From positions 806,001-870,000 of the forward strand of contig JAMWBK010000006.1 of assembly GCA_029953675.1 (NCBI GenBank): 64,000 nt of DNA, written 5' to 3'. Shown piece by piece: positions 29,759-63,256 of the stretch. The first letter of the stretch is position 1, and each line of letters opens with the position of its first letter. The position numbers and the translations under genes were made by a program. Source of the DNA: Rhodosorus marinus CCMP1338. Lineage: Eukaryota; Plantae; Rhodophyta. Under the pieces are notes generated by a model. That model saw only the letters and a program-made list of their open reading frames with translations. It made no database searches and had not been told where the DNA came from.

Positions 29759-31817
29759 TCGCTAAAAGAAACCGCAGGAGCGTGTCCCTGCGTGGCACAG
29801 TTGGGACGAAAGGGATCCAAAAGCTTTGGCGCTCAGATCCAGTCACTACAAGTCGACACGCGAACCGTGTGTATACGAAGATGCCCCTGCTTCGCATCTT
29901 GATGCTTCCCGAAGACTAGCCATCCAACAAGGCTCTTCCGCGCAACAAAAAAAAAAAATGCTGGGGTTGTTCAGTACCTTGCAAAGACTGCTTCACCAGC
30001 AACTCACCAGCCTTCCCTTCCCAGCCCCCTTTCGGAAGACCACGCCTCGCCCCAAATAATGAATAATGTACATAATAAGAAATGCTTTATACGAACAACA
30101 AAAAATTCTAGGGGGGGCTTTTTTCGTAATGAGCTTCTCTTTACACACGAAAATTTTTGACAACCAAACAACCCCCCCCGTCGTTGTCACTAAGAACATT
30201 GACTTGATTAACGGTTATTCTTTGAGATTACATGTTCTGTTCTGCACGTTGATACCTATCAGAACATATCATACAGCGTTCTAAAATAATGAATAAAATT
30301 ACTCGGTTTTCTCGTCGGGGGTGCTAAAAAAGTTGAATTCAATTCTATTCCCCAATATCATTTTCCCTCAACACCCCACCCCTACGATGTAGACGATCAA
30401 GTCACCCGATCGTTCTTCCAAAATTGATTCTTTTTCAAGATATTTGTAGATATGACTATAACTTTAATACATCTACCTCCCCCTCCTATCCCCTCCTAGC
30501 TCCGCCGTCTTTCGAGTAGATCGTACAAAAAAATCCCGCCGCTCACCCATTTGTTTTTATTATTATTCAATTGTCCTTCTCCGATCATATATTTTATTGG
30601 CTACGAGCCAAGGTGGTCATTTATCCAAAAAAAACACCTCCGAAATCTGATATGAAATTTTTTTTTTGGAGAGACGGCTTTTACGTCAGACATAGAACTC
30701 TTCGAGTTCCTGAATTATATAAATATATCTAATTTTTTAAAGCCAACCATGTTCAGCCAATAAATTTCAGTTTGCTTCCAAAAAACGAATAATGCACAAC
30801 CTTCCCCCCCTCCCCCCTTCCCCTTTCTCCCTTCTTCTTTCAATCACTAGATAATGAACTACGATTAAAAAAACCAGCATATGGTTCGCTGAGCAGTTCG
30901 GAGAACCCGACCACACAACGGACCAATGAAAAGGCAACCCCCCCAAAAAAGTATTACAGCCAAACGCTAAAACGGTCTCTTCCCAAAGATTAAAACGATA
31001 CACAACTAAAACATACTCTATAAATTTTTTTACTTTATTCAAACATATTGTTTCCGGATATAGGGCGAAAGCACTGGCCGTGCATGGAAAACTTTTCACA
31101 ACTCCACAAAAAAAAAGGAAAAGAAAAAGGACCCATGTGACACGTGCTAGATATAGATTGGACATTCACATTCCCCCGGGGCGCATCTCTATTTCCTTCT
31201 TAAATATAGAGACAAACAATATTTATGCAACGAAAGGACGCGTGGAATATGATTATTGGATATCATTGCGATAGTATATTAAATTGACTGTCTCTTATCA
31301 TATTGCCGTGGGCTGCATCTTTGCTAAGTTTTGTGAGCATGAGAGTGGTTGCGTATGGGGATAGTTTTTCATTGAAAAAAAGAAAAAATAGATAGGTTAT
31401 TGGCAAAGAGTTTTTCTTTGTGCAGGGAAAGGGGAATTGTGGAAGAGGGGGAGGATTTGGGGAAAAGGGGGGGAATGTGGAGTCTTGTGGTATTTCTGCA
31501 TGCGCTGTACTTCCGTTTTGAGAGGATTTGTTTAACAAGGGGAATGAGCCAAGGGTGGGGATGTGCAGATTTAGGTTTGGGATGTAGTACACAGGATGTG
31601 AGTAACGCCTAGACTATATGTATATATAGTGTGGAGTTTTGGAGAGGACAACTTCTTTCTCTCGGGCGGGGAGGGTTGGGTTGAGGAGAGCTTGTTATCA
31701 TTTGTTCTTCTGTTGTAAAAGAGTTATTGATTGATTCTTGTTGTCGTTGTTTGTTTTGGTTTTACGCGGTGCGAGGATTGTCTTGTTGTGTAGCAGACAC
31801 TCAGCTATTGGATCGAG

Positions 31818-32442
31818 ATGGTGCAGCGAGCGTTGGTGCTTGGGAAGGAGGCGCCGTACTTTGCGGGGCCTTGTTCCACTGGAAAAGTCTTGAGGAGCAC
31901 GGATTATTTCGGCAAGGTGCCGTTGGTGCTGTTCTTCATGCCCAGTTTTGACGCGCAGGCGATTAGGACGGCGAAGCTGTTTAACGCGGAGTTCTCAGAT
32001 TTCAGAAAGAGGCGAACGATTGGTACGTATATTGCTGAGCAACTGCGATTGCGTCGTTCCCCCCCTGAACCCATAGGAGCCAGGGAGTAGTGCTTCCCGG
32101 AGTGGCATGTTTCACCAAGACTAACAGCTCACTTGTACCTTCTTTTTAAATACAGTACTTGGAGTTTCTCCCGCCAAGCCTGAGATTCTGAAACGCTTCA
32201 GAGAAGCCTACCACATTGCGTTTGAGATCATCCATGATGATGGTGGCGTTATGTTCGAGACATTCAAATGTCACGGATTGCTGGGGCGGCCTGTGGGGCA
32301 CACGTTTATTATTTCCGCCGACGGTGTTCTTGAAGCGATCAACAAATCTGGAAACTACAAGAAGCACGTCAGCGACGCTAAGAAACATCTCCCGGAGAGC
32401 AACTCTTACAAGCTGAAGACGTCGGACGGTTTCTTTGACTAG
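31818..32442 (+). CDS. PrxQ/BCP-fold (AhpC/TSA) protein lacking the peroxidatic Cys, about 163 aa, 2 exons
   Basis: LGKEAPYFAG...STDYFGKVPLVLFFMP...-VLGVSP...LKRFREAY.IAFEIIHDDGG...HTFIISADG follows the BCP layout; intron 32023-32155. Confidence 0.75.
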
Positions 32443-35727: not shown

Positions 35728-36909
35728 ATGCATGTGGTAGTGGTTGGTGGAGGTATTGGTGCCTTGACGGCGGCACGTTTTCTAAGCAACGAAAAGAAGG
35801 ATGATTTGCGAGTAACGCTGATTAGTCCGAGGGATTACGTAGAGTATATTCCATCTGCGTTACAATGTATGGTGGATCCTTGGCATGTAGACAAGTCTAC
35901 GGCAGTGCTTGAGGACGTGGTGAGACGTTGCAAGGGTAGGTTGGAGTTTGTTCAGGATCAGGTCATCGGCATCGACGATGGCAAAGTTTCTCTCCGCTCG
36001 AACCGCGATATTGCTTATGACTGTTTGTTGATAGCCTCTGGTACTACGTACGATTCGCCGATCCATGCCGGCGGGAAGACGGTGGATGAACGGAAAGCTG
36101 AACTTGAGGAGTTCAAAGTACGACTGGATAAAAGTGAGCACGTGATGATCGCTGGAGGAGGTATCACCGGAGTTGAACTTGCCGCTGAAATTCGACAAAC
36201 CTATAAAGATAAGGAGGTGACTCTGGTAGCGAGATCTACGGGACTCATTCTAGACTGCGGGGCCAAAGCCAGTGGTTACGTTGAGAAGTGGTTCAGGAAA
36301 CACCGCGTGCGGGTTATCACCAATGCGAAAGCGATGCCGGCCTCCGACGGGACGGTACAGCTGTGGTCTGCTGACTCTGGCGAGGATACCGAGAAGCTCA
36401 AGGTGGATCTCTTCATTCCATGCTTCGGCGGAAAGCCTAATTCACAGTTCATGGACGAGCGCTACCTAGATAGAAGAGGGCGGATCGTAGTTGGTACGGA
36501 CCTAAGGGTGGAAGGGATGGGAGGCAGCGTATTTGCGATTGGGGACATTGCTAGCATATCGGGAGGACACGCCCTTTTCGCGGAGAAAACGGCGGAAGTA
36601 GCCTCGAGGAATATTCTTAACCTCAACCAGAACAAGCCCATGCTCAAGTATCCAATTTCGGCTTACAAGGTCCCGTATGAACTTACGGCAACCGCAGTAA
36701 GCCTTGGTAAATGGGATGGTATCGTGATCATGGGCCCGCTCCCGATCTCAGGGCTCTTGGCCGCTGGTATTAAGCATTTCATCGAATGGGCGTTTGTTCA
36801 ATTCCTCTCTGTGAAACGGTTGGGATTCATTTACGGAATCGTGCTCGGAGTCACGCTCCCGACCGTGCGCCTTCTGGACAAGCTGACTGGCAACGCTCCA
36901 TCGACTTAA
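35728..36909 (+). CDS. AIFM2/FSP1-like FAD-dependent NAD(P)H oxidoreductase (Pyr_redox_2), intronless, 393 aa
   Basis: VVVVGGGIGAL (FAD-binding), YDCLLIASG, VMIAGGGITGVELAAEI (NADH-binding), VFAIGDI; hydrophobic C-terminus. Confidence 0.88.
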   Translation: MHVVVVGGGIGALTAARFLSNEKKDDLRVTLISPRDYVEYIPSALQCMVDPWHVDKSTAVLEDVVRRCKGRLEFVQDQVIGIDDGKVSLRSNRDIAYDCLLIASGTTYDSPIHAGGKTVDERKAELEEFKVRLDKSEHVMIAGGGITGVELAAEIRQTYKDKEVTLVARSTGLILDCGAKASGYVEKWFRKHRVRVITNAKAMPASDGTVQLWSADSGEDTEKLKVDLFIPCFGGKPNSQFMDERYLDRRGRIVVGTDLRVEGMGGSVFAIGDIASISGGHALFAEKTAEVASRNILNLNQNKPMLKYPISAYKVPYELTATAVSLGKWDGIVIMGPLPISGLLAAGIKHFIEWAFVQFLSVKRLGFIYGIVLGVTLPTVRLLDKLTGNAPST

Positions 36910-37655
36910 CCCCACCGAAAAAGACGTCATACTCTTGAATGCAACTCTCGAAGCGGAATACGTGAAGGAAACCTGATAAAATTAGCACTTACCAATGTGG
37001 TTCATAGAAACTTTTCAGACAACTGTCACTAACTCTGGTGAAACATAGATTGTGGGGTGAAACGTGCACGCTATTTACTCTATAAAAACCCATTTGAGAA
37101 GCACAAGGTCTGAACTAGAGATAAAACCTGCTTATCATCAGTATTCAGGATGGTCGCGTTGGACTGCCAACGCCAAACATCGGATCACCTGTCACCCGAA
37201 GCTTTGCCCACCACCGCAAGGGGCTCGACTGATGATACCTCTCCATTCCGAGCAACTGCTGTTCGCAGTGTTCGAAATCGGAGCAGTTTGAAACATACGA
37301 GCTTGGGACTCAGCCCCGTAGATGATCAAGCGCTTTTCGCATCGCAGCTTGCTTAGACGAAAGCCTGGTGAACGAGAAAGGTCGCACTGCGGTTTCTATC
37401 TAAACCCAGATGGATACACTCAAGCTGGACAACGACCCACTTGCTGAAGGATAGTGGGCTATTGCTAGTACCAAAGATCAATCAGCTCAGCCATTCTGAG
37501 CAAGACCCTCCTCTTTCCTTATGGCTGTCTTGTCGTCGTCACTCTCATCATGATCATCGGAGGGGGATGTGAGGAAGAGCTCTTGACCAACGGACTTGTT
37601 CATTGGATTGTAAATACATGACACATCAGACTTCTCTTGGTTGAGATCGATAAGC

Positions 37656-38866
37656 ATGTGGAGAGAGGTTGTTAACGCGTACGCGGCATCGCCTATCGAT
37701 CGCCGGAACAACTTTCGCAAGGACGAGGGGATGATCGCTGCATCTGAAGACTCTCCTTGCGCAATGACTGTGGTTTTGGACAACCGATTTCGTCTTCTAT
37801 CCGATGATGGAGGCTTGTTATGGGTTCAGAGGAGAGATCTTGGTGACTCGAGCGGTAGCCTGACAGCATTTCTGGGTGACTGGAAGAGAAACGAATGCGA
37901 GACTTGGTCTTGCTTCGCAGTCCAAGTCGAACCTTCATTCAGTCCAAACGGACTGAAGCCTGGCTACAAGTTTTCAGAGCTTCGAGGCCTGACGGGAAAC
38001 GGAAAACTGTCCACTGAAGAGAATGCGATCGCGGCACACGCAAAGTCGCTTCTCGAGTTTCACGCAAAACATCAATTCTGTGGGATCTGCGGGAGCGAGA
38101 CAGTGTCCGAAATGGGAAGTTCTAGAAGAAGATGCACCAGAAACCTGGTTGGAGAAGAAGCTACACCTGATATGGACGATAACTGTACCGGAATGTGGTT
38201 TCCGAGAACCGACCCCGTTGTCATCGCCGTCATAGTGGATGCGGACAGATGTCTTTTAGGACGAAAAGCTGTGTGGCCGAAGGGAGTTTTTAGCGCTCTA
38301 GCAGGCTTTATGGAACACGGTGAGAGCTGCGAAGATGCTGTTCGTCGTGAGGTAAGTAATAGATCCTCTTTCATCAGCCGAGACGTACTGTCCGTTTTCG
38401 TCCATGATAGATGTGGTAGTTCAGATCGTTTTAGACTATAAATATATCTGATTAATTTATGTATTTCCAAATATGTTTTTGCAATAGCGGTTTATTATAC
38501 CGTCTTTTTATGTATACCCGGTTGGATGCATCCTAACAGAGTCGTTTCGCTCCCGTGCTTGTGCTGCTGTGACTTGACATTCAGGTTTTTGAGGAAGCTG
38601 GAGTTTGTGTAGGAACATGTAGATATCATTCATCCCAACCATGGCCATTTCCGTACTCCCTGATGGTGGGATTTCTCTGCAAGGCGGAAACCACGGAGAT
38701 CACCGTGGACGTTGATGAGCTCGAAACGGCTCGCTGGTTCAGCAGAGCTGAGGTTTTGGAGATGATCAAGGGAACCAGCGACAACAAGCTCCCACCGCCG
38801 ATGGCCATTGCGAATCGACTCTGTATGGCGTTTGCGGAAAGCGACTCGATCGCCTCTTTCGACTGA
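37656..38866 (+). CDS. NudC-type NADH pyrophosphatase (NUDT12/13, NUDX19 family), 2 exons
   Basis: Zn ribbon FCGICG...RRC...C, FPRTDPVVI, Nudix box AGFMEHGESCEDAVRRE-VFEEAGV, SQPWPFPYSLMVGF; intron 38352-38584. Confidence 0.93.
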
Positions 38867-41165: not shown

Positions 41166-43870
41166 TTAGGATCTGCCCGCTTTCTCAAACTTCCTCGTTA
41201 TTTCCTCCAGAGCGGCATCACCAGCTTCTCGTTCCCTCCGCTCCGCTTCCAGGTTGATTCCATCCCGGTCAATCTTCATAGGAAATTTTAGAAACGGGCA
41301 AAATATCAGCACTAGGATTCGGAGGCTAGAGTAGAGAGCTGAGTTTTACAGAAGCGAACATGCCCAACTCACCGTCTTCTGATCTGGTTCGAAGCAATGG
41401 TAAACCTGACAAGTTCTAGCCGGAACGTATAGCTCCAACCAGTACGGCCGTTTCTGTAAGAAGGAATACAATCGGAACGATTAGCCACAACCATGGGCCT
41501 AGAAAGCAGTAAGGTTTGAAAACCAAAGCAACATACGTTGAACCACTCCTCATGAGTCTGGTGCACTACATCGTGATGTACCCTTCCTTGACCGTCGAAC
41601 TCTTGAGCATCAGAGTCCAGAACGATCTTGTACTTGCCACCCCACCAGGTCCCGAACCGGTACCCAGTATACGAATTTGATGTGTGGAAGTTAAAAACGA
41701 ACAGCAGTCTGCGGCCTTTCTCATACGCAATGACCATGTCATCATTGCTCTGCGTGACCACATATTCGTGCGACTGCGGGTAGCAGAAGGGTGTCTCGGA
41801 CGCCATTTTGTGCATTCTCGCATCAAAACGGAAGAGGAACTTGTATCGAAGCTCTTCATTATGGGCCAGATCCCATCGACGTCTTGCGTGGTGGTAGGAG
41901 AAACCGTTTCCTTCTCTGGGGAAATCGATCCACTCTGGATGGCCAAATTCGTTTCCCATGAAGCTCAGATAGCCTTCTCCTCCCAGCGAATAGGTTAGCA
42001 AACGAATCATCTTGTGCAGTGCGATTCCACGCTCGATAACTGGAGTCGGGTACTGACTTGTCGACATATTGGAGTACATCTCCTTGTCCATCAACCAGAA
42101 CGCAATAGTTTTGTCTCCAACCATGGCCTGGTCATGACTCTCCGCATAAACAATGGTGTTCTCCTGCCACCTTCTATTCGTTAGAGTATGCACGATGTCG
42201 AACATGTCCCATTGCTCGTCGGAGAGTTTCTTTAGGATTTCAATCCATTTGTCTGGAATGGCCATTCCAAGACGATAGTCGAACCCGAGTCCTCCCTCTT
42301 TGACAGGACGACACAAGGTAGGCATGCCGGATACGTCCTCCGCAATCGTTAGGCCCGTTTCAGGGTATCCTGTATGGATCATTTCGTTCGCGAGCATCAT
42401 ATATATACAAGCATCCATATCAACATGCAGACCAAAGTACTCGTTGTAATTGCCCGTGAATCCCATTCCAATTCCATGATGTTTGTAAAGCATAGACGTC
42501 ACTCCATCGTAGCGGAAGCCGTCAAAGTGGTACTCATCCATGTACCAGCGAATGTTCGAGAGAAGGAATCGCAGAACTTCCCAGTGTCCGTAGTTGAAGC
42601 AGCGTGAATCCCAGCCAGTGTGGTACCCCTGCTCACCGCCGTGGAAATACTGGTGGTCTGTCCCATCGAACGAATTAAGACCATCCATAGAATTCGAGGA
42701 AGCATGAGAATGAACGATGTCCATCAGTACGTAGATGCCCATTTCGTGTGCTCTATCAATCAGCATTTTCACGTCCTCTGGCGTTCCAGAGCGGGACGAC
42801 ACTGCGAAGAAGTTTGTCACGTGGTAGCCAAAAGATGCATAGTATGCGTGCTCCTGGATCGCCATTATTTGCAGCGCATTGTACCCAAGGTGTTTGATCT
42901 GCGGAAGTACATTTTCTGCGAACTCCGCGTAGGTTCCAACCTTCGGGTCGTTGCTTCCCATGCCGACGTGGCACTCGTATATTCGGAGAGATTTCGGTTT
43001 TTTCACATGCGTAGGGGTTCCGCTATTCCATGCATACTTCCATTCGGTCGGTGGATCCCAGAAGACCCCATCGTAAAGGTATGTCTCAGGATTCTGTACA
43101 GCGAAAGGTGTCCTGGAGGTTTTCAAAAGAAGTTTCAAAGTGAGGGTGCTTAATCGCGGAACGATTCTTCCTGTATGTCCATGGTACCAGGGCACTTACC
43201 ACGCTGGGATTCTCTCCAAATGCATTCCTCCTTCAGAAACGACCACAAGCTTGATTTTGCTAGCATGATCGATTGGCGGGGATCCATCGGCCCTATTGGG
43301 GATTTCAATAGTCCACACCCCGAAATCGTCCTTTCTCAAAGGATGACTTGTCCTATTCCAGTTGTTAAAGTCTCCAGTGATGAACATCTCCTTCGCACCC
43401 GGAGCCCACTGTGGTTGAACAAGCATTCATTCACGATCTCAGCGAAAAGCCTAGCGAGGTAATTGAACAATTTTAAGCCATGGATCTTACCTCTCTGTGG
43501 GTAATTCCCCTCGATGTCTTTATTGTACCGAACTTCTTAAAACCTTCCGAGAACTTCATGAGACCACCTTCATGGTCATCAATCGATTTCTTCAACTCGT
43601 TAAACTTATTGTACCGATATTTCAGGGCGTCTACAAAAGGCTCCAGGTATACATCATCCGCTACAACCGCAGTTCCGTCTGTATTCGAACCCCAAACTGT
43701 TTTTTGGAGGGCAGAAAACAACCAAACACACGCGAGAGAGAAAACAGAAAATCTTCAGTCTCCAAGAAGCAAAAGACACAATCCGAAAACACAGGGAAAA
43801 AACAGAAAGGCAAACGTCTTTCTGTTTTAGAGAACGAAAAGGAATCCTTACCCGCCTTCCTGTCACCCAT
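41166..43870 (-). CDS. SBE: 1,4-alpha-glucan (starch) branching enzyme, GH13_8, no transit peptide
   Basis: [58 protein letters not shown] (nucleophile), IAEDVSG (acid/base), [25 protein letters not shown]. Confidence 0.97.
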
Positions 43871-47920: not shown

Positions 47921-49274
47921 TTAGATTTTGTGCATGAAGAATTTCTCCAGCTGACCTCCGAGCTCGGAGACGTAGTGGTGTTTCCCATTGTAATGGTAGC
48001 AGTTCTCCACCATCCTGCGGACATCCGCGATGAAAATGTCCTTTGTAATATAGTACCATCCAATGTCCAGTCGGTCTTGGATAGTTTTTAGATCAATCGG
48101 GTTCTTAATCACTTCGTAGTAGTCAACTGCACCAGTTTTCTGTGGGTCTACTGGCTCAATAAATGGCCACGCAGCATTGTGGCTTTTGACTTGATTCAAC
48201 ACATTCTGAAGATGTTGCTTGAGTTCCGCCTGGGCCTCGGGGTCCTTGTTCGCTATACTCGGAGGCTTGACCTTGGTCTTCAAATCACTGGGAGGATCCT
48301 TGCTCGGGTAGATATCAGAAAGCCCGGGAATTGACATAACATCAATTCCTTTTCTCTTCCGCGCGTCGATTCCAGGGTACACAATGTGCGAATTTGAAAC
48401 CTCCTTGAGCTTTTCCACGAGACAAATTTTTTGTGCTTTCAACATCGCGGGTATTCTCAGGTAATTCACCTTCTTGTGAAGCTTGCATTCCATCAACGTA
48501 ACCCCCTCGTAGTCCTTGATATACCCTTGCCACATGTTAAGCGGAAGCGTGATCTTTTTGGAGAAACCTTGCTTTTTGAAGTACGGCACAGCGTTGTTGT
48601 CGGCACAAGTGAGAAGAACAGTCAGGCCGAGTGACTTTGCTCGCTCCTTAGTCTGTGCCATCAGCCTTGTCCCATAGCCCCGTACTTGCTCGGAGTGCGA
48701 AATAGCCAGAAACGCGATCTCGCCAAATCCTTGCTTCGGGAATGGGCGGTAGCAGCACCCTCCCATAACAATATAATCACCATCTGTTCCTCGCTTTAAC
48801 AACGCGAGTGACTCATGCTTCCTGTCAAATACGAGTCGCGTTACGTACGGCTTTGGCATGTTTGGCAATTGCTTCACGAAAACGTTCTTGAGCCCAAGAA
48901 GCCTCACAAGCTGTTCTCGAGAACAATTCGGTCCTTGGGGAACACGAAAAACGTTTTATCAGCTACACGGGTAACTGAGCAGACTCCTGAGAATTCATAT
49001 TGAGGATATAGTCACAGGTTAACTTACCATCGTTTCGCACCACATCAAATTTGACGTTTCCATTCTTCTCCTCCTCCTCCATCTTGACCCACTTTTGCAC
49101 GTAAGCATGCTGCGAATCGGGTCCTAAGATATCTGCCGTCTCTTGAACTCGCGCACCAGGTGGAGCCGGCCGCGGCCTCTTGGCTGATGGGACCTTGCAG
49201 ATAGGGTCAATACAATAAGTCTCCTCTACCTCCTCTCCATTTTCATCCACCTTTGCTTCCTCCTTCCCCGACAT
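47921..49274 (-). CDS. GCN5: GCN5 histone acetyltransferase (GNAT plus bromodomain), 2 exons
   Basis: LKNVFVKQLPNMPKPYVTRLVFDRKH, FGEIAFLAISHSEQVRGYGTRLM, ADNNAVPYFKKQGF, YIKDYEGVTLMEC; bromodomain AWPFIEPVD..DYYEVIKNPIDL..NC.HYN. Confidence 0.97.
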
Positions 49275-50479
49275 GCTTGCTACCCCAATCCTGCGCTCAG
49301 ATCACCGAGTAACAACTAGCACACCAACTTACCAAACTCCACAGAAAACAGCGAGACAAACGCAACTATTCGCGTTCCAAGTTGCTCAAACAGTCCACAA
49401 CAACAGTTACCACATTAAGCTCAACGAATCCCCCACCTCCAAACACCTCGCCCCGGGCCGAAGTCCAACCTTTTCTCCGAGCCTCGATTCTCTACACCTA
49501 CAACCAAACAAACGCAAACAAGCAAAAAAAAATAAACACAGAGAGAAATAGAGAGAAACAGAGACAGAGACAGAAAGAGTAAAGCCTTCTACAAGTCTTG
49601 GCTCGTCTTGGCTCCAAAGTTCTCCTCCTTTTCAATCCGTCCAACTCTCCATTCCTCCTCAAACATAAAAGCCATGTCATATCCGAAATCAACAAACCCC
49701 CTCCCCCCCAAAAACACAAGACACTGAACACTTTCTTCCTCCTTCTAGAACGCAATAAGATCATATGCATCTTAAGAGTCATCAGTAAACAGTCATTTTA
49801 ATTCATTTTAGATCCTTTAGTATAAATTTTATAAAATAATTCAGTCTATATAGGTTTATATAGATTGAGTTATTTGCATGACTGATATGTCTTTTTATTT
49901 CTAGCCAGTTTCTTAAAGTTTGGTGTTGGGCTCGTCGTGGAGGGGGTACGTAGCTCGAACTATTAAGGTGGTGAACTGAGGTAGCGATATGTAATCCCTG
50001 TCGAGAGAGCGACTCGTTTGTGCTGCTGCCCTCCCCGTCCTGGAGGGGATGTGATGTGATGTGATGAGATGTCCTTTTGCGTGCTGGCTCTTTGCTGTTC
50101 TTTCATTTGCGCGGTTCTACCCTCTTTTTTTGGACTGAGCCCACTGCGCGGGGGCAGGGGGGCGCTAGCTAGCCTTAGCATTGTGGATGATCAAGCTGCG
50201 CTTCCTCTATCCTTCGCGTGGACAAGACAAGACAACTCCCTTCGCCGAAAGCCCCCCACCCCTCCCGCCTCAAAACACTCAATTCCAAACCAAATTGAGA
50301 ATCTGCTCCTGCAACGCTCAAGCCCCTTTTTTCAAAACTATTGGTCAATATTCAATAATATAAAAATAAAACAAGATATTTATATTCAATATTTCAATGC
50401 TTTAAGGTACTTATACGGTATTTATTTATTAAGACCATTATTTTTACATAGAATCTGCCGTGAGAATCAGTACAAAAGA

Positions 50480-50507
50480 TCCAGTCAATATTCATATGTT
50501 GACTGGA
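50480..50507. promoter_or_regulatory. Palindrome TCCAGTCAA-N10-TTGACTGGA
   Basis: Perfect 9-bp inverted repeat about 230 bp upstream of the UBL gene; shares CAGTCAATATT and TTGACTG with the element at 6156. Confidence 0.45.
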
Positions 50508-50738
50508 AAAGTGAGTGAGTGCCTATTTCTATCGTTTCTATGTCTTTTGCGATTTAGTTTTTGTAGAATTTTTGACGGTATGAGTTTGTTTTAGTTTCCA
50601 AACTTTGGGATTTTGTGAAAAGGGGTGCTGTGGTTGGATCGGTCTGAGCAGCATTCAGTGTGGTGAAAGGTGTGTAGGAAAGCGTGTCTGGGGAGGAATT
50701 ACAAACTAGTGAGCGTCAAGACTTGGTTAGAAAAAGTG

Positions 50739-51219: not shown

Positions 51220-51642
51220 TCAGATGCTAGAAATCAGGTTTCTTTGGGACTCTGGGAGAGAAGAGGTTTGTACCATACAGACCAAAGCAAGCTGAGATGG
51301 ACAATGCACGAGATTCAACTGCTTGTCAGAGTCACCAGAAGCGCACCGCTTCGGTAGCCGCTCAACTGTTTTATGCCCTGGCTCAATATGTGGATTCTTT
51401 CCTGAGGGAACCCAGGGCAAGCCAATGTGAATGACTTTTGGTCTCTCAAGGGACGAGCTCAGAAAAGTAAAAAAGCTTAGTAGTCTGCATTGTATCGCCA
51501 CCGAATCGTTGACTTTGAAAAAGATCGAAACCGAGTCATTCCAAAGCCTGTTAACCCCGGTTCGCATGTCTTCGGCCTGATTCATCCCCGTAAGCTTTGG
51601 TCCATCAGTTGAGTTCAAGCTGACCCTTCCTTCACCAGCCAA
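51220..51642 (-). CDS. Hypothetical protein
   Basis: Open frame starting just downstream (on -) of the AT-rich core at about 51700-51850. No family recognised. Confidence 0.3.
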   Translation of the reverse strand: MAGEGRVSLNSTDGPKLTGMNQAEDMRTGVNRLWNDSVSIFFKVNDSVAIQCRLLSFFTFLSSSLERPKVIHIGLPWVPSGKNPHIEPGHKTVERLPKRCASGDSDKQLNLVHCPSQLALVCMVQTSSLPESQRNLISSI

Positions 51643-52380
51643 GCACTCGAACGTAACTGTCCCAAAATAACTCTTCCATTACAAAGGTCATTACTAGTCT
51701 CATACTACCCATTAAATATTCTTTAAATTTACAGGCAAAATATAAATATTTTAGGAATAAAAACAATATTTTATTATATCTTTATAATTTTAGATCATAG
51801 TACGACTCTAAATCGTCTATGGATCCTAATGTAAATAGTAAATTGGGACACAAAGAAGTAGCTCGGTGGGGAGAGAGGTTTGCCATTGTGCGTGTGTGTG
51901 AAGAGGAAGTGAAGAACTGGTCTGAGATTTTTTCCTTTTCCAACTAAGACAGGAAGTGATCGATAAGCAAATTTAGTTTTTTGGAGTTAGTTTTTCTTGA
52001 AGGAAAAAGTCTGAGTCAGCTGGTCGTTTTTCCGTGAAGAGGACGTGCCGTGTACTTCGGTTGTTGTCTTTCGCGAAAAAGAGAGAATGGGGAGGCTTTG
52101 ACAAGTGGTGTTTCTGCTTCAACTTTTTCGTTTTCAGTTTTTGGCTTTTCCCGGGATCGTAATCGTAGCTACGAATGTAAAATCCACGGTTGCGTTATTT
52201 AGAGGTTTGAGCCCAAGTTGGGATTTGTCGCCGTGTTGCTTTGCTGGTTCTCTGTGGGATGATGATGGTCTAGATCCCCGGATTTTTTTTTGCGAGGGGG
52301 GAGAAGGGAGAGGGGAGAGGGGTGGTGAGGTTTGCCTTGAAGCGTTGCACTGGCTTTGGGCTTAGCCAAGTTGTCGTAAG

Positions 52381-55300
52381 ATGGAATCTACACAGGACAA
52401 AGTCGATGACAAGCAGACTGGTGAAGAGGAGAAGAAAGTAGAGGAGGAGCAGCCTCCAGGCTGTGTCGAGAAATCTAAGGAGGATGTTGACGGTCAGAAA
52501 AAGCTCTTGCAGTCACCAACTTTTGGCATGAAGAACCTGCCGGTAAATCCAGGTCCGATTGACTTCACTGGGTCCAGCGTCTCGTTCAGTCCGACGGTTA
52601 AGCCACCAGTTGCTAACCTCTTTGGAGCTGGCCTGTTTGGCCAAGGACAGGCCCTTGGTTTCCAGTCAGGTTTGGGTACGCTTCCAAGTTGAATGTAATT
52701 GGCACATTCGGGAGCTTAAGATTCATCTTCCCTTATTCTTTTGATTCGTTGTCAGGGCTCTTCGGATCGACGCCCCCCCAGAGTACCCCACCTGCCTTCG
52801 GCTCAGGGTTTCCTGCCCCTCCGGTATTTTCTTTCGGTGCCACAAGTACTGCCGAGGCTGGAAAACTTCCATCGGGTCTGAATCCTGTGGTAAGTGCTCA
52901 GGGCACTGAAAAAACTAGATCAGAATTGACTCCGACTAGTCAAGCAGACAAGCTCCCAGCGAGTATCGAAGATCCGGGGCTTGCACAATCTGCGGACAGA
53001 ACCCAGCCCGAACTACAAAAAGTCGTTCAGGATGGAACCTCGGGAACGGATCAGCCTCCTACTGATGCTGGCGATCCGAAAGGAGCAGCAGTACCTGCTC
53101 CTGCCGCTGCTCTGGACTCGATAGGTATACTTGCGAACCCAATTACAAGAGTTGTGCGATGGGGTGCTTACCTGGGGTACGAATTCTTCTTCGACTACTT
53201 CTCTTTCGAGGAAAGACGTTAAAGATTTGCGAAATTACTCGGCAAGAGCGAGGGTGATCGCGAAGCTACCATCAGGAGAAAAGAATATGGGATGGGGTCC
53301 TTTGACAATGACAGCGGCAGCCGATGGAGTCAAGATTGTACACGGTAGTGAGGCGGATGGCTCTTCAAGACTTGAGATCGACCTTGATGAAAAGACGCTC
53401 CTGAGAAGTGTTAGGGAAAAGAGCTACCAGATCCACAATACAGGTGCTCGCGGATCGTATTTGGTTCAGCTGCAGAGCAAGGAAGTCGGGGACGACTTTT
53501 ACGCGAGGGTCGTGAAAATTCTGGACAAGCTGAAAGGCTCAAATCAGCCAGCGGTAACGGGGATCGCAGTCGACGGTGGAGCTACAGCAAGAAAGCTTAG
53601 GTCACAGGCGACGAACAATGCCAAGAAGAACTTAGCCACGGGGTCGGCATCGGCTACTGGGACAGCGAGCGTTGGAATCGCCGCCACCGGGAAAATCTCA
53701 AAGAAAGCTGCGAATGCGAAACCTGATGACAAAAGCATGCTGCTTAAAAAGATGCAACTTCTCGAGGCGCGGAAGCAACTTTTGAAGAAAAAGGGAAAGA
53801 AAGAGGGTAACTGCTCCGTCCTCGAACATCTAAGTCAAGTCTTCATTCAACAAACGTTAACCTGAAAAATACACGTAATTTCTAGTCAAACTGCCTGCTG
53901 ACGAGGGAGCAAGCACTCCTAGTGTGAAAGCTCCTGCTATTGAAGCTCCTGCTGTTGAAGCTCCTGCTGTTGAAGCTCCTGCTGTTGAAGCTCCTGCTGT
54001 TGAAGCTCCTGCTGTTGAAGCTCCTGCTGTTGAAGCTCCTGCTGTTGAAGCTCCTGCTGTTGAAGCTCCTGCTGTTGAAGCTCCTGCTGTTGAAGCTCCT
54101 GCTGTTGAAGCTCCTGCTGTTGAAACTCCTGCCGTTGTACCTCCTACTGCTATACCTCCTGCTGTTGAAGCTGCTGTGGTTGAAGCTTCTGCATCTACGA
54201 GCACCCTGATTCCGCCTCCATCTGTCAGTGCTACTCCTGACAAATCATCTGCTGATGGGAGGACAGTCCAGACAGCTGCTGACGAGCCCGTGCAAGCGAA
54301 GGATCAAGAAGGCGAATCTGATGTAGGCTCGTCAGTGCCAACTTTGAAACCGGTCACGCCGAGCGCTACTGCGAAGGATAAGGAAAGTGGACTCCCGGAG
54401 CTTGAATCTGCTCAGCAACCCTCAACGCCACCCAAGGTCATTGTGCTCGGGCTAAATCCATCCAAAATCAGTAAGTATCTTAAGATTTACGAAGCACAAC
54501 AGTTGATTTATCTTAATTCACGGAAACGTCGGCATCTTTTTCAGATGCTGTTGAAACCAAGACGAGCGTTGATCCAGAATCTGCCCCTGCCACTGCCAAA
54601 GTACCAGGAGGTGAGTACATGACCGTCCTCTAGTAAGAGGTTCGTAACCATGCTGAAGCTAGTGGACCCTTTTGCGTGCATTTGACAGCTGCTGCGCCTG
54701 CACAGCCTACGATGGAAAAGACTCCGGCCTCGGTCGGTACCAGCGCTACCGCGGTCAAGAGCCCATCAAAGTTCAACGCCGCTGCGCCTGAGTTCAAACC
54801 ACCAGGGATCGCTGCACTTGTAGTGCCATCCACAACAGCGCTGCCTCCGGAAAGCGAGCATAAACCGACTGACGCACCAGCGATTGGTTTGGCTTCGAAG
54901 GCAGCATTAGGCTCAATATTATCCTCGACCATCGCTCCAGCGACTTCAACTCCCGGAACATCAGCAGTGCCGATGACCGATGGCTCCAATGCTCCGCGAT
55001 CTGCCGCAGCAGTATTTGCAACGCCTAACCCCACCCCCACCCTTCAATCAAGCTCGAGCGCTGCTCTAGCCGCCGCAACGGAGTCTGGTGCAGTTGCAAT
55101 GGACGTGGTGGGTTCAAAGAATGACAAGCCATCATCGGTCGAGGAGGCTTCGATATCCAAGAAAATCGGAAACACTGGACTCGGGGCTTTAAACCCACCC
55201 GGAGAAGCACCTCGGGTGGCGGAAAAGCCTCGAATTGCCGTACTTTCAACTTCTGCCGCAACTGCGAAACCTTCACAAGCTGCTGATGGTGGCGCAAAGT

Positions 55301-57990
55301 CTTCGGCGACTGGTGCGGGACCCACTGGCCAAGGTGCGCTGAAGGAGAAGCCCGAAGTGCCGAAGCTGGTCCAGGGTGATAAGGCTCTTTCCAAACCGAC
55401 CAATACTATCCCGACAACGACCCCGCCAGCGAGTCAGCCCGCTCCCGCCGCCGGTCCGGGACTGGTCAACCTGAACAAAAAAATAGCGCTGAAGTCGATA
55501 CTGCAAAAATCCGCCGCACAGACAGGGACTGGAGCCCCAACATCTGCTCCTGAGAAGGCTCCACCGGCTTCGGGTAATGCAGATTCGAAGCCTGCAGTGC
55601 AGACCCCCGCAAAGTCAACAATGATATCCCTCGTGGGATCGAAACCCCAGGTGAAGCCGGGCGCGGTAAGCACAGAGATTAAACATCGTCAAACGCTCAG
55701 CAGGAGTGCATGGATTATAATCTAATGGAAACGGAAACTTTATGTCTTTTCGAAGGGCGGTAAGCCGGGCAAACCCTCAGCGCAGATACCATCTCCGAGC
55801 ACTGGCAAAGAATCTCTGAAGCGGAAGAAGTCCGTGGATGCTTTGAAGAGGAAACTGCTAAAGCAAGGCAAAGTAAAGGACGGAAAAGCACCTGAGGCAA
55901 TTGAAGCATCTGTACCTGAGTCCGCACCTCCTCCTGATACCAGTAAAGGGGTGAAAATTGATGTGACTCCACCAGCGCAGCAAAAGCCAGTCGCACTGCC
56001 GAGCGGTACCGTTCGGGTGCTCCGGGCTTCTACGACGAGCCAGAAACAGCAGATGGAGGTGGGATATTCTCAAAAGCTCATCACACTCATGTCCCAATGC
56101 TCAATAAAAACTCATGTTCTTCTTCTGCTCCTGGGTCTGCTCAGAGCACCTCAGCGAAACGAACTCCGATTTCAACGATTCCTCAAGTTGTCGCCCCACT
56201 AGCCGCGGCGGGACGAGGAAGCCAGCATCCGCAAGGAGTAGGCGAATATACGAGAACGCAGACAAGTTTGCCCCTGTTATGCGGACTGCTAATCATACCT
56301 AACCGTCTGCCTTCCCCAGGTTGCAATCGCAAAACCCACCCTAAAGGCACCAACACCTCCAGTCAGCAAGGACAAAGTGCTGGACTCAGTTCGAGTGTTC
56401 GTTGAAAAGCACATTTCAACCTTTAAGAGAAAGTTGGAGGATGTGCTTCCAACGAAACTGATACGTACGAAGACCAAAGCGAGACCATTGAACAGGGAGG
56501 ACTTTAACCACCGATTAGCTACATTCGGAGCGCTGAAGTGGCCAATGAGAACTGGAGGGATCAGCGCATTCGAATGTGCCAGAAACGGCTGGATAAACAC
56601 GGACTACAACACATTGGAGAGCGGCGATACGAATGGAATCGTTCGGTAAGTAGAAGATTAGGCCTGGCTTCGTACACACGAAACGAGTTATTCATGTGTC
56701 TTACGTCGCCTCGTTTTTTCCGGGTCTAGTTTTGACGGCTCCGCGGAAGACCAGGATGCTGAAGTTGCGCGCGTAAGACAGAAAGTGGTAGTCAGCGGTC
56801 ACGATGTATTGTCAGGCTGGATTGGCCATTCGTCACCGGAGGACTTCTCGAGAACCCCGACTGACTTCCTCTCGAAGGCGGCAGTACAGAGCAGAGCATC
56901 CGCACTGCTTGCCGTGTCCGTGGCTGTTAAGCCATCTGAGAACGCGATTCAAAAACTTGACAAGGCCAAATTTGGAAAGGTTTGCGAGCTCAAGAAGAAT
57001 GAAAAAGGAGTAATCAACGCGACGATTTGCGCGATATTCGGATGGGCGCCCAAGTAAGAGCCTATCGAAGCATATGATTGGGCAGGTCAAGATTCTGAAC
57101 GGCGGGAAGCCAGGACTAATTCAATTTTCAAACCACCCTTCAGGTCGATAGGGTTCTCGGGTACGATCTCGAAGACTGTTCTTACATGTGAATTATGTGG
57201 GGTCCGAATTCCCATAGAAACTGTGTCGGAGTTTGACGCAGACGATGAGCATCGATGGTACTGCCCGTTGCTAAAGGATGACGGCCCGAAGAAAGCACTG
57301 GATGCGTTTGTAGGTCACGCAGAGCCTATTCAGCATCGCACGAGTGACCAAGACAAGCACGTGGGAATGAAAAGGAAGCACGAGGATGATGATGCAATCG
57401 CGGCTGAGCAAATGGTCGCAAAGCACCCTGGCAAGGGAGATCTCAGCAGCAGTAAGATCGAACCTGGCGACGAACCACCACCGCTTAAGCGGCAGCATGT
57501 TGACAGGGATACCTCTGCAGTTGAGAAGTCTTCCTCAGCTGTTGAGAATTCGTTCAAGAAACAGAATCCCAAAGCGGAGCAAGCTGCGAAGGTCGTGGAA
57601 TCGGAGGATGTGAAAGCTAATGCCGGAGAACCCGAAGATGTGAAAACTCGCGTTCCCGACGCCGAAGGCCTCCAAGCTAATGCTTTGGGATTAGTGGATG
57701 TGAAAGCCATCAGCAGCGAATCCAAACCAGCGACAGCCGTGGCGGGAGAGGTGCCGGCCGTTGCCGAGAAGCTGGTTGATGCTGGAACATCTAAAATGGT
57801 ACAAACTACTGAACCTGCGGCCCCAGCAAAAGAGGAACAAGTAGTACAAAAGGGTCAAGGTTCCACAATAGATCAAGCGGATTCAACTGGCTCTGCCATG
57901 GTTGCTATGGAAATGGATAATCAACCTGAAGCTGAAAAGTCAGGGCAAGGACCGCAACCGTCAACAGACGAACAGAAGCCCGACGCTTAA
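52381..57990 (+). CDS. Large (roughly 1500 aa) ZC3HC1/NIPA (Rsm1/Pml39)-like protein with FG-like motifs, a RanBD/PH-like domain, an EAPAV repeat and a PAM2 motif; about 11 exons
   Basis: All ORF pieces join in phase through GT-AG introns. C-terminal RPLNREDFNHRLATFGALKW..ISAFECARNGWIN..HDVLSGW..AIFGW..LTCELCG..FDADDEHRWYCP matches the zf-C3HC/Rsm1 pattern. Confidence 0.8.
53926..54135 (+). repeat. Coding 15-bp tandem repeat (TGAAGCTCCTGCTGT x12 plus 2 degenerate copies)
   Basis: Directly visible; encodes (EAPAV)12. Confidence 0.98.
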
Positions 57991-58589
57991 GCCTCGGTTC
58001 GAGCAAGGAAGATATCGGAAAGCGAAGAACCCGTTAGGACGGCAATGCAATTACTTTAGATGCCGAAATCGGAAAACAATCCCGGCTACTGGCCGGTTGC
58101 ACAGAAAAACGAGCAGGGCACTCGAAATACGGAAGCTCATATGCTTTAGCAGCTCGCAAGTGAGAAGATCCTTCATTAGAAGGTGCTTGTGACCAGAACA
58201 GCAATGAATCCCGTCCGTGACTCAATATACATAGCAAAAACCTGTGTGCTTCAATAAAAAACAATGGCTAGCAGAGCCCGCGTCATCCTCAACGCCAAGC
58301 AAGGGAACAGGTGAGAAGCGTTTCCAGGCACCCACCAGAAAACCAAGAGGATGAGACAAAAAGACTCGAAATTCAATTTAGACCATTGAACACCCTTTTT
58401 CAGTATTTTTTCGCCATTTGTAGTTTTGGGTTAAAAGTTTTGCAGTTCTATATGGAGGATATGAAAATCTATTATTTTTCGACGCTTAAGGAAAACTTAT
58501 GAGAAAAACAGAAGTAATATATGGAGCTAATTTTTTTACCGATAAGAGGTACACATGAAAGGAGGACTCTCCCCCTACCGATGGGGCAG

Positions 58590-60589: not shown

Positions 60590-63256
60590 ATGGATCTGAA
60601 TGGCAGGAAAGAGGAGGAGGAGGATACCTTCTATGTAGAGGATCAGGACGTCGATGGTGCGAATTCTAGTACGGATGATCCTCCACTCTTGGAGGAAGCG
60701 ATGGGGTTTCATCAATCGTTTACAGCGGCAGCCTCGAAGCCCCTGCTGAAGATTGAGACACTACACGCGAGCCAGTTGACTCGGGTGACTTGGTTCTATG
60801 CCGCCACTCTTGCGTGCACGATCATCATAAACACTGTCTTTCTTAGCTTAGTGAATACCGTATGGCTCGAGGAAGTTACGTTCGGGGCATTCACGTACGC
60901 GTTTGCGGAGCCGGACCTGTGGTGGCTGATAATCGAAGTTTGCATAGGAGTCTTCTTCAGTGCAGGGGTTCTGATTTCCGCGATCATCTACTTCATAGCG
61001 GTCTTGAGGACAAGCCGCGAAGAGAGAACCCGGGAAATGCTGTTCGTGCTAGTTCTCGGCATAACCCTTATCCTCGTCTATTTGCCTTTTGTGGAAGCGC
61101 AACTACTTACTGAAGACATACAAGATCCCGGCGCGCTTTCTACGATGATGATGCTCTCCGCAATCGTCAACGGTGCCTTTGGCATCACTGGGTTGTTCTT
61201 CTACTGCTGGTCCACCACCATATCATTTCGAACGCCGCGCGACAAGAGCTTTACCTGGACGTACTACTTCAAGATGAGCGTTCTGTGTTTTCTTTTCTTG
61301 ATGAGGGTTCTTTCTACAGTGATGTTAAGAATTGACTTCACTTGGGTACCGTTCGCATCTTTGGGAGCCGCTCTGTCGGCTATTCATGAGGTGACCCAAG
61401 ATCCGGCTCCTGGAACAACAACGATCGTTGCTGCAAACATGGGCCTTGAGTTGATCATTGTCCTTTGTATTGTCCTTGAAATCCGGTGGACGCAGAGAGT
61501 TATTGGTCACCTGGACTACCTAGAGCATCGCTCTCTCCAGATCGGGTACCGGTACGGCACCACCGCATCCCCTTGCTCTACACCCTGAATCCGGTCTCTG
61601 ATCCTGGGTTTGCTCTCCTTGAATGTTCTTTTGTTTATCTGGGATTTTAGGCAATTCCGCTATTACTTGGGAGTCACGTTCACCACTTCTCTCCTGTTGG
61701 GGCTCCTAAGCGTTCTTTTAGGAAGTGAAGATAGCATTGCGTTCATCGCCAAGTATTCCGGGCAGCTGCATCTTCAACCTACGGCGGGACGCATGGCGTA
61801 CTTGACGCTCATTCCAGCTTTTGCGATGCAGCAAATGTACTATATGCTGCCAGCGAGTGCACCCGGCATTCGGGACATCCTATTCTGCAAGTGGGAAAGA
61901 AAGAAAACTGACGTATGAAGATTCTTCGAAGCCACTTTTTTCGAGGATGTTCGCCCAACTCAATCGAGGTCCGCCCTTCTGTACATTGTCACGATTTACC
62001 CTATCAGGTCACGGAGAGCTTGTTCAAGTATCGAATGTTTGAGAGACGCGGAGACCCCACTTTCAAAGCAACAAGTTTTGTTATGGAGACGTGCGTGACG
62101 ATGTTCAATTTGTCTTGGGTTCCCTATTCCTACGGAAAGGCCGTCAAGAGACAAGCTACTCCTGCGGTAGGTGCAGCTGGTCCTTTATTTGGCGTTGGAC
62201 TGTGCTGTCTTGTTCCGGGTGCCATTGCGTCCAAGTCGGACCTGCACTCTTCATATTGCTCAAGCTGCGTAGCTTTTTCTCCAACGAATTCATTGCAGTA
62301 CAAAGTGAGTATCCGCTCATCACCTGGACACTGAGAAAGGTTCTTCTTTTCGCCCTATTTCGTTTTCGCATTTGTAGGACTTTGGGAACACAAAGTATGA
62401 GATTACTCTGTACGCTAGCAACGCTCCCACGGATACTCATGGTTTGGTGTACTCGGCGGACGATCGAATAGTAGTAGCTTTCAAAGGGACCCAGTCCGGT
62501 GCGAATGTAAGAACCGATCTTCAAGCCGCGATGTACCCTCTCAACAGATTCGTTGAGGGCTTCGTGATAGAAGATCAAGTGCACCATTTGCGCAAGGGCT
62601 GGGTGAGGAAAAAGATGCAGCCGATGATTCATAAAGGGTTCGGGTTTGCGTACACGACTGTTCGGCAACTAATATGGAATGAAGTGCATCGCCTATACGA
62701 AGAAAACCCACGCCCTCTCTTCTTCACCGGGCACTCGTTGGGCGGAGCGCTGGCGACGTTGTGCGCAATGGACTGCTCGAAGACGATCTCTCCTGTTGAT
62801 GGCTGCTACGCGTTTACGTACGGGAGTCCCAGGGTTGGAAACAAACAGTTTGTGGAGGAGTACAACAGGGAAGTTCCATGTACGTGGAGACTGGTTCACG
62901 CTGAGGACCCAGTCACGAAGCTCCCGCCTGCACTGTTTTTCCGTCACGTTGGACAATCCGCCTTGATAACACGAACGGGTAATTTGTTCATAGACCCAAC
63001 TCTTTTTGAGATGGGATGGATGCACTCGAAGATTGGTATCCGCTGCAAGATGAAGATCCACAAGAAAACTGGCTACGCGGTCGCAATTTCCGCTTTCATT
63101 GAGAAGCAGCACCAAACATTGATGGGAGATCGGGGGAGAATCTGGAGAATTCCCAAGAAAGGCATCCAACATGGGGATGAGTCAAGCGCCGAGGCATCAA
63201 ACACTGGAAGCCATACTGTCAACTCGAACGTCCGGACCATAGACGAGATACTGTGA
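60590..63256 (+). CDS. Multi-pass membrane protein with a C-terminal class-3 lipase domain, multi-exon
   Basis: Many hydrophobic helices in 60590-61900, then IVVAFKGT, IHKGF, FFTGHSLGGALATLCA, YGSPRVGN, HAEDPVTKLP and a candidate catalytic His in KIHKKTGY. Confidence 0.9.

Follow-up and report, generated by a model that had tools for sequence, protein, structure and literature searches.

A long, divergent ZC3HC1/Pml39 homologue without the first zinc site in the red alga Rhodosorus marinus

ZC3HC1 (NIPA, ILP1), Pml39p of S. cerevisiae, Rsm1p of S. pombe and DdZC3HC1 share a tandem of BIR-like modules, BLD1 and BLD2, and ZC3HC1/Pml39 has recently been recognized as a structural part of the nuclear basket. 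The family is described as short, with two zinc modules, and is defined by a two-module zinc signature named NuBaID (PMC10162418). In human BLD1, each of the single substitutions C117S, C120S, C156S and H152A abolishes binding to the basket and to TPR (Gunkel et al. 2023, PMC10162418). The human W431A mutant, by comparison, retains binding in knockout cells (PMC10162418). The ZC3HC1 homologues of an entire clade, the Tunicata, carry changes that break the signature (PMC10162418). In red algae, basket nucleoporins were not found by hidden Markov model (HMM) searches of two genomes (PMC6411479), and divergent basket parts are therefore expected in this phylum. Here we describe a gene in 64,000 nucleotides (nt) of nuclear DNA from the red alga Rhodosorus marinus (assembly GCA_029953675.1, contig JAMWBK010000006.1; this whole stretch is called the window, and all positions refer to it), whose product of 1,591 amino acids (aa) carries the two modules in the order known from the family.

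Compared with the described members of about 330-640 aa, the Rhodosorus protein is three times longer. Its BLD1 lacks the three zinc cysteines, its BLD2 ends in leucine rather than in an aromatic residue and lacks the long loop, and ~1,140 residues precede the domain, among them a patch of phenylalanine-glycine (FG) dipeptides, a PH-like domain and a PAM2-like peptide. A description of FG, PH/RanBD-like or PAM2 parts for the ZC3HC1 family was not found in the literature, including PMC10162418. The preliminary description of this locus, made from the DNA letters, had stated that known members are much shorter and are not known to have such parts; the length comparison and PMC10162418 agree with it. 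It had also put the gene forward as a candidate for an undescribed system, which is too strong, because the gene elaborates a known family in a lineage-specific way. New are the architecture and the zinc-free BLD1, while the protein itself had already been deposited as hypothetical. We favor, with a probability of roughly 0.55, that it is a divergent pore-proximal scaffold of the ZC3HC1 family with lineage-specific adaptor modules, and we do not claim a proven Ran/PABP hub.

The gene consists of 11 exons on the + strand, joined into a single open frame of 1,591 codons that begins with the ATG at 52381 and ends with the stop codon at 57988-57990. Its ten GT..AG introns of 74-91 nt each were obtained by enumerating in-frame introns around the donor positions proposed earlier. 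The spliced product (P0004) is identical to KAJ8904000.1 of Rhodosorus marinus (locus NDN08_000530), which bears the names "hypothetical protein" at NCBI and "C3HC-type domain-containing protein" in UniRef, and the NCBI annotation of the contig likewise holds one gene here. This identity and the continuous frame bear out the approximately 11 in-phase exons of the preliminary description, whose order of features (FG-rich N-terminus, beta-rich domain, linker, PAM2 motif, two modules) was also recovered. Its ten donor positions all fell within 7 nt of true introns, although the first donor is 52676 and not ~52669.

Transcription as a single unit is supported by a 5,671-nt JGI contig (L001) from a close relative, which is collinear with the window over 51937-58281 at ~83% nucleotide identity. 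Introns 1-9 are missing from it, each cut precisely where its boundaries had been predicted (for intron 3 the comparison was made base by base), and it is for this reason that we regard the contig as spliced RNA of a related Rhodosorus. As had been claimed for 52381-57990, one transcript spans the whole gene: the contig runs unbroken from the 5' to the 3' untranslated region (UTR), with no break before 56320. Its open frame extends from MESSQEKV… to …GWAPK, where intron 10 is retained before the last exon resumes. The proteins of the two taxa are 77% identical, all insertions and deletions are in frame, and the frame stays open through ~700 linker codons in both. Since the spliced contig of the relative covers the whole gene and the linker frame is open in both taxa, a model of two genes or a chimera is ruled out. 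The locus is one real gene with a long, largely disordered product. The retained intron (L001 4437-4533, equivalent to 57054-57143 of the window) begins with an in-frame TAA stop directly after …GWAPK, and a read-through product would end before the zinc site of BLD2 and hence lack both this site and the tail; the retention could represent an intermediate still to be spliced or a truncated isoform under regulation.

Word-indexed homologue searches with the C-terminal part, with the beta-rich domain and with a two-sequence NuBaID profile (E<=10) returned fragments of the close relative only; those matched by the C-terminal part were two short proteins, one of them encoded on L001. No orthologue from other red algae was gathered in these searches and two metagenome scans. 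The first scan gave no confirmed match, and the candidate L002 from the second was a false positive, as its translation reads as a bacterial PorP/SprF-like protein. The architecture has been seen so far in Rhodosorus only.

The C-terminal part matches the Pfam family zf-C3HC (PF07967, now titled "NuBaID N-terminal domain") over profile positions 1-104 of 132, where its 49.2 bits exceed the cut-off of 22.2 (E=6.8e-13). Precomputed assignments to this family also exist for the deposited protein and the open reading frame (ORF) of the relative. BLD1 reads G-W-x9-S-x2-T-x28-H-x3-S-x-W with exact spacing, the three cysteines being replaced by Ser, Thr and Ser in both taxa; the BLD1 signature G-[WYF]-x(6,24)-C-x(2,3)-C-x(17,82)-H-x3-C-x-[WYFML] is accordingly not matched. 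Alignment with hhalign to a fragment of human BLD1 (probability 95.9%, E=5.7e-9) places Ser/Thr/Ser on C117/C120/C156, the histidine on H152 and tryptophans on W107 and W158. BLD2 reads G-W-x17-CELC-x17-HRWYC-P-L. Its Cys-Cys-His-Cys site is complete, so that all zinc ligands of the signature G-[WYF]-x(8,140)-C-x2-C-x(14,994)-H-x3-C-x-[WYFRCV] are present, and only the final leucine lies outside the listed set. Because hhalign brings CxxC and HxxxC into register with C272/C275/H425/C429 of human BLD2 (E=7.8e-5), homology of BLD2 to the NuBaID_C module (PF08600, formerly Rsm1) is likely; BLD2 also scores 14.3 bits with zf-C3HC, below threshold. Of the human fragments that served as yardsticks, those of RanBP1 and NUP50 are 100% identical to PDB chains, and that of ZC3HC1 was checked only against the residue numbers in PMC10162418, all of which agree. 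PDB sequence searches with the C-terminal part and the human ZC3HC1 fragment found no solved relative, and a single-sequence AlphaFold model of the NuBaID region reached a pLDDT of 35.

Judged from these alignments, the C-terminal part is a true homologue of ZC3HC1/Pml39, yet one without the complete NuBaID signature, and this divergent pair of modules is the only domain of the protein that profiles detect. Both Rhodosorus sequences have the serine, threonine and serine, and purifying selection acts on the region; for these reasons the zinc-free BLD1 is more likely a stable fold than a product of decay. The homologues of tunicates resemble it in that they are recognizable despite changes at positions essential in the human protein (PMC10162418). 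In contrast to them, the Rhodosorus protein shows a clean, conserved loss of one entire zinc site with the other intact, carries new N-terminal modules and belongs to a red alga.

Selection along the protein was estimated as dN/dS (Nei-Gojobori) from two sequences, the coding sequences of Rhodosorus marinus and its relative, at an overall dS of 0.26. The lowest value of the gene was found in the beta-rich domain at aa 217-330 (0.17), followed by the acidic N-terminus (0.24), the FG patch (0.25), the basic region at aa 331-418 (0.28), a conserved island at aa 856-915 (0.29) and the NuBaID region (0.36), whereas the linkers ranged from 0.7 to 0.9. The protein is a chain of constrained modules between nearly neutral spacers rich in Ala, Pro and Ser, and its N-terminal modules are under purifying selection.

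The most constrained of these modules probably adopts a PH superfold of the type of the Ran-binding domain (RanBD) or EVH1, and is RanBD-like by fold alone. Of the five AlphaFold2 models built from a two-sequence alignment, a single one was usable; it contains six strands and two helices (pLDDT 61, pTM 0.53). In a Foldseek comparison of this model with the PDB, RanBDs filled nearly all of the top 24 places (E 6e-4 to 2e-2, TM 0.44-0.51), among them Yrb2 (3wyf, E=6e-4), Nup2 (3oan), NUP50 (2ec1 and 7mo0), RanBP3 (2y8f), RanBP2 and RanBP1; other PH-superfold domains, namely the NECAP PHear, the Rpn13 Pru, the CARM1 N-terminal domain and the Homer EVH1, ranked lower. In Nup50, Nup2, RanBP3 and Yrb2, FG repeats stand N-terminal to the RanBD, and the order of an FG patch and a RanBD-like domain is a suggestive resemblance to these proteins. 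Like NUP50, Nup2p, RanBP3 and Yrb2p, of which NUP50 and Nup2 are associated with the basket, the Rhodosorus protein begins with a charged segment, which is followed by a short FG region and then by a domain of ~110 aa with a predicted PH superfold. This domain differs from theirs in that it is not C-terminal and has no detectable sequence similarity to them, and its contact with Ran is a prediction.

The FG patch is real but short. Within aa 48-126, at a net charge of +1, there are six FG dipeptides, of which two belong to GLFG, and all six are kept in the relative; none of 20,000 shuffles of the protein reached this clustering. Pfam Nucleoporin_FG gave no match to the protein. The PAM2 motif is plausible. 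FNAAAPEFKP at aa 664-673 conforms to the consensus LNxxAxEFxP (PMC7356810), in that N, A, E, F and P are in place and Phe stands for Leu, and the relative carries FNAAAAEFKP; the chance expectation of the corresponding regular expression is 0.004 per protein of such composition. PABP partners that bear PAM2 (Paip1/2, ataxin-2, eRF3, PAN3, LARP4 and plant CID/ERD15) likewise present a 10-residue peptide of the LNxxAxEFxP type in a disordered region. The Rhodosorus peptide differs from theirs in that it stays below the Pfam gathering score and in that its host is a presumed nuclear-pore protein.

The linker of ~700 aa is rich in Ala, Pro and Ser and has no detectable Pfam domain. Its island at aa 856-915 shows 90-95% identity to the relative, compared with 60-75% in the flanks, and belongs to no Pfam family. 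Of the two basic clusters, one is a KKKGKK cluster at aa 412-422, and the other (aa 980-1000) is, by its composition, a candidate nuclear localization signal (NLS). The copy pattern of the APAVE repeat differs in the relative, with two 10-aa in-frame indels, so the length of the repeat evolves fast. Short hydrophobic peptides of similar form (VIVLGLNPS, RIAVLSTS, MISLVGS, VRVLRASTTS) recur at aa 601-612, 818-826, 944-955 and 1047-1057 in exons 4, 6 and 7; they are conserved between the two taxa and are reminiscent of motifs for SUMO interaction or beta-strand addition.

Starting from the demonstrated gene structure, single transcript, ZC3HC1 homology, BLD1 cysteine loss, FG clustering and pattern of constraint, a divergent scaffold close to the pore could be pictured as follows. 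The protein would be nuclear, at or close to the pore basket, with the two basic clusters serving as nuclear localization signals, and the pair of BLDs would contact a coiled-coil filament of the TPR/NUA type. Upstream of this pair, the lineage has added a short GLFG-like FG patch, the constrained PH-like domain of ~110 aa, and the long linker with the PAM2-like peptide, the basic clusters and the island. The FG patch and the PH-like domain may offer transport receptors a weak contact in the style of Nup50, Nup2 or RanBP3, and the PAM2-like peptide may recruit a protein with an MLLE domain such as PABP. The functions of these added modules (FG patch, small RanBD-like fold, PAM2-like peptide) are weakly supported.

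A number of results weigh against this picture. At the C-terminus, a regular-expression search for the complete NuBaID signature (PMC10162418) gave zero matches in the Rhodosorus marinus protein or its relative, and BLD1 carries Ser, Thr and Ser at the very positions C117, C120 and C156 where a single exchange of Cys for Ser kills basket and TPR binding in human cells. Both facts weaken the basket anchoring that had been proposed earlier. Of the two zf-C3HC/Rsm1 modules claimed at that time, the first scores above the cut-off but lacks its three zinc cysteines, and NuBaID_C, although in the correct place in BLD2 (profile 2-61), stays under its gathering score with 12.6 bits versus 20.2 (E=0.15). 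The FG patch contains only six FG and is short. The PAM2 motif, claimed earlier as well, fits the consensus and is kept in the relative, yet Pfam PAM2 (PF07145) remains below its gathering score of 20 bits, with 13.8 bits for a 595-aa query and 18.6 bits for a 30-aa query. A pattern expected 0.004 times per protein will arise by chance many times per proteome, and with a dN/dS of 0.60 in a 25-aa window, drawn from two sequences, the conservation of the peptide hardly stands out from the background.

The RanBD-like part fares similarly: Foldseek ranks RanBDs first on a model of pLDDT 61, but every sequence test is negative. Pfam RanBD (Ran_BP1) gave no match even at E<=10, and the Pfam NUP50 family was unmatched too; hhalign against nine RanBDs of RanBP1/RanBP2 and against human NUP50 stayed at a probability of <=0.2%; an unfiltered hmmsearch (--max) for RanBD found nothing within the beta-rich domain; and PDB sequence and profile searches with this domain gave no RanBD signal. 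The Smith-Waterman score against the NUP50 RanBD was 30, compared with 25±4 for shuffles, and 267 of 2,000 shuffles reached it. The model itself is of low confidence, as only one of the five models exceeded a pLDDT of 36, and the Foldseek TM-scores are just ~0.5. Finally, an exhaustive phmmer search with the beta-rich domain against 1.84 billion representatives gave as genuine matches the protein itself and the close relative only, and thus no homologue of the N-terminal domain outside Rhodosorus. The six other phmmer matches were FG-GAP or DUF11/DUF7507 repeat proteins in which one 30-residue stretch was matched repeatedly, and they were discarded as spurious.

An artefact of annotation or assembly, in which an FG/PH-like gene and a C3HC gene were misjoined across a non-coding spacer, would account for a long, near-neutral linker (dN/dS 0.7-0.9) without detectable domain; it is very improbable, given that the spliced contig of the relative runs from 5' UTR to 3' UTR with introns 1-9 removed, that the ~700 linker codons are open in both taxa with in-frame indels only, and that NCBI annotates one gene. 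The idea of an export hub is plausible and mostly inferred. In its full form, a RanGTP/karyopherin-binding module of the Nup50/Nup2 kind, made up of FG and a true RanBD, a PABP-binding PAM2 and a TPR-binding NuBaID would all be functional. The protein would then serve mRNP export or quality control as a hub at the basket, and in red algae it would perhaps stand in for distinct proteins of the Nup50 and ZC3HC1 types. This would agree with the leading place of RanBDs in Foldseek, with a succession of charged N-terminus, FG and RanBD-like domain that mirrors Nup50, Nup2 and RanBP3, with a fitted and conserved PAM2 consensus and with a zf-C3HC match above threshold. The non-detection of basket nucleoporins by HMM in red algae (PMC6411479) points in the same direction. 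However, with negative RanBD sequence tests throughout, a low-confidence model of the beta-rich domain, a sub-threshold PAM2 and lost BLD1 zinc ligands, we consider the full form unlikely.

Conversely, the losses in BLD1 might be taken at face value. The gene would then be a neofunctionalized or decaying descendant of ZC3HC1 that has lost basket binding and works elsewhere, for instance as a disordered scaffold in the nucleus or the cytoplasm, or in which the N-terminal domain alone matters, and low-complexity composition would have produced the FG and PAM2 matches as a side effect. One substitution at the positions now occupied by Ser, Thr and Ser abolishes binding in human cells, and the tunicate homologues carry similar changes (PMC10162418); moreover, the dN/dS of the NuBaID region (0.36) exceeds that of the N-terminal domain (0.17), and the linker is nearly neutral. 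Nevertheless, purifying selection still acts on the NuBaID region, the G-W, the His, the Trp and the full BLD2 site are kept in both taxa, the identical Ser, Thr and Ser in both suggest a stable zinc-free fold, and the FG patch is constrained with a dN/dS of 0.25. A minority of our expectation goes to this explanation, and the larger part to a divergent, pore-proximal member of the ZC3HC1 family. The coordinates of all features are given in Table 1.

Table 1. Features of the 1,591-codon gene and its product, in positions of the window
Feature	Position	Strand	Basis or remark
5' UTR, minimum extent	51937..52380	+	aligned to L001 positions 32-455; stop in frame ahead of ATG
Exon 1: start codon, acidic/Lys-rich N-terminus, beginning of FG patch	52381..52675	+	
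Intron 1	52676-52755	+	donor 52676 set by cDNA of the relative and identity to P0004
Exon 2: remainder of FG patch, linker 1	52756..53124	+	
Exon 3: probable PH-superfold domain and basic region	53216..53806	+	
Exon 4: APAVE repeat, linker	53886..54470	+	
Introns 2-4	53125-53215, 53807-53885, 54471-54544	+	GT..AG, in-frame joining
Exon 5	54545..54610	+	
Exon 6: PAM2-like peptide, conserved island	54689..55665	+	
Exon 7: basic NLS-like cluster	55756..56058	+	
Introns 5-7	54611-54688, 55666-55755, 56059-56144	+	GT..AG, in-frame joining
Exon 8	56145..56237	+	
Exon 9: first half of BLD1	56320..56645	+	
Exon 10: remaining BLD1, start of BLD2 as far as its G-W	56730..57053	+	
Introns 8-10	56238-56319, 56646-56729, 57054-57143	+	GT..AG, in-frame joining
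Exon 11: BLD2 zinc site, acidic C-terminal tail, stop codon	57144..57990	+	
3' UTR, minimum extent	57991..58281	+	aligned to 3' end of L001
FG patch, aa 48-130, spans intron 1	52522..52850	+	FG clustering, dN/dS
Compact beta-rich domain, aa 217-330, spans intron 2	53109..53541	+	AlphaFold, Foldseek
Basic region, aa 331-418, net charge +14	53542..53805	+	
15-nt tandem repeat, 17.7 copies, 92% matches, encodes (APAVE)n	53928..54192	+	
PAM2-like peptide SKFNAAAPEFKPPG, aa 662-675	54766..54807	+	consensus, sub-threshold Pfam
Conserved linker island, aa 856-915 (…GLVNLNKKIALKSILQKS…; also …PPASQPAPAAGPGLVNLNKKIALKSILQKS…)	55348..55527	+	identity to the relative
Basic cluster LKRKKSVDALKRKLLKQGK, aa 980-1000	55810..55872	+	composition
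BLD1, NuBaID-type domain, spans intron 9	56488..56859	+	Pfam zf-C3HC, regular expression, hhalign to human BLD1
BLD2, spans intron 10	57007..57279	+	regular expression, sub-threshold Pfam, hhalign to human BLD2
Acidic disordered C-terminal tail, aa 1376-1591, net charge -15	57340..57987	+	homologous to P0001 and P0002

The surroundings of the gene are occupied by ORFs with ordinary eukaryotic domains of housekeeping type, which have no functional link to the 1,591-aa protein. The domains are those of a condensin subunit Cnd1 (9660-13073, +), a pyridine nucleotide-disulphide oxidoreductase (35728-36909, +), a NUDIX NADH pyrophosphatase-like protein (37641-38441, +), a member of the alpha-amylase family (41369-43195, -), a GNAT acetyltransferase with bromodomain (47921-48907, -) and a class 3 lipase (62444-63256, +). 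Two nearby ORFs of >=90 aa, at 50069-50518 (+) and 51220-51642 (-), had no Pfam match. Approximately 1.3 kb upstream of the ATG, the public annotation contains an 85-aa gene with a weak match to the ubiquitin family (L003 1359-1733, + strand). Rfam found nothing over the window, whose lowest G+C content, 0.415 compared with about 0.47-0.54 elsewhere, lies at 30001-32000.

If the N-terminal domain is a cryptic RanBD, the gene would represent a fusion of two basket components and give a hint where the missing function of the Nup50 type resides. For Rhodosorus, possibly along with other red algae whose basket nucleoporins were missed by HMM searches, this would mean that an FG-plus-RanBD unit of the Nup50/Nup2 type and the TPR-binding modules of the ZC3HC1/Pml39 type, which are normally separate, are fused in a protein with a PABP-docking PAM2 and a zinc-free BLD1. 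We regard such a fusion as quite improbable; if true, one chain would join the handling of transport receptors and Ran, the architecture of the basket and the recognition of poly(A) mRNPs. If no such reading holds, the gene is a long, lineage-specific relative of ZC3HC1. As a conserved homologue that has kept the landmarks of the fold while the cysteine ligands of BLD1 are gone, it amounts to a natural experiment on whether BLD1 must bind zinc in order to fold and to engage TPR. Given that HMM searches did not detect basket nucleoporins in red algae (PMC6411479), a candidate basket protein from this phylum also helps to reconstruct the evolution of the nuclear basket.

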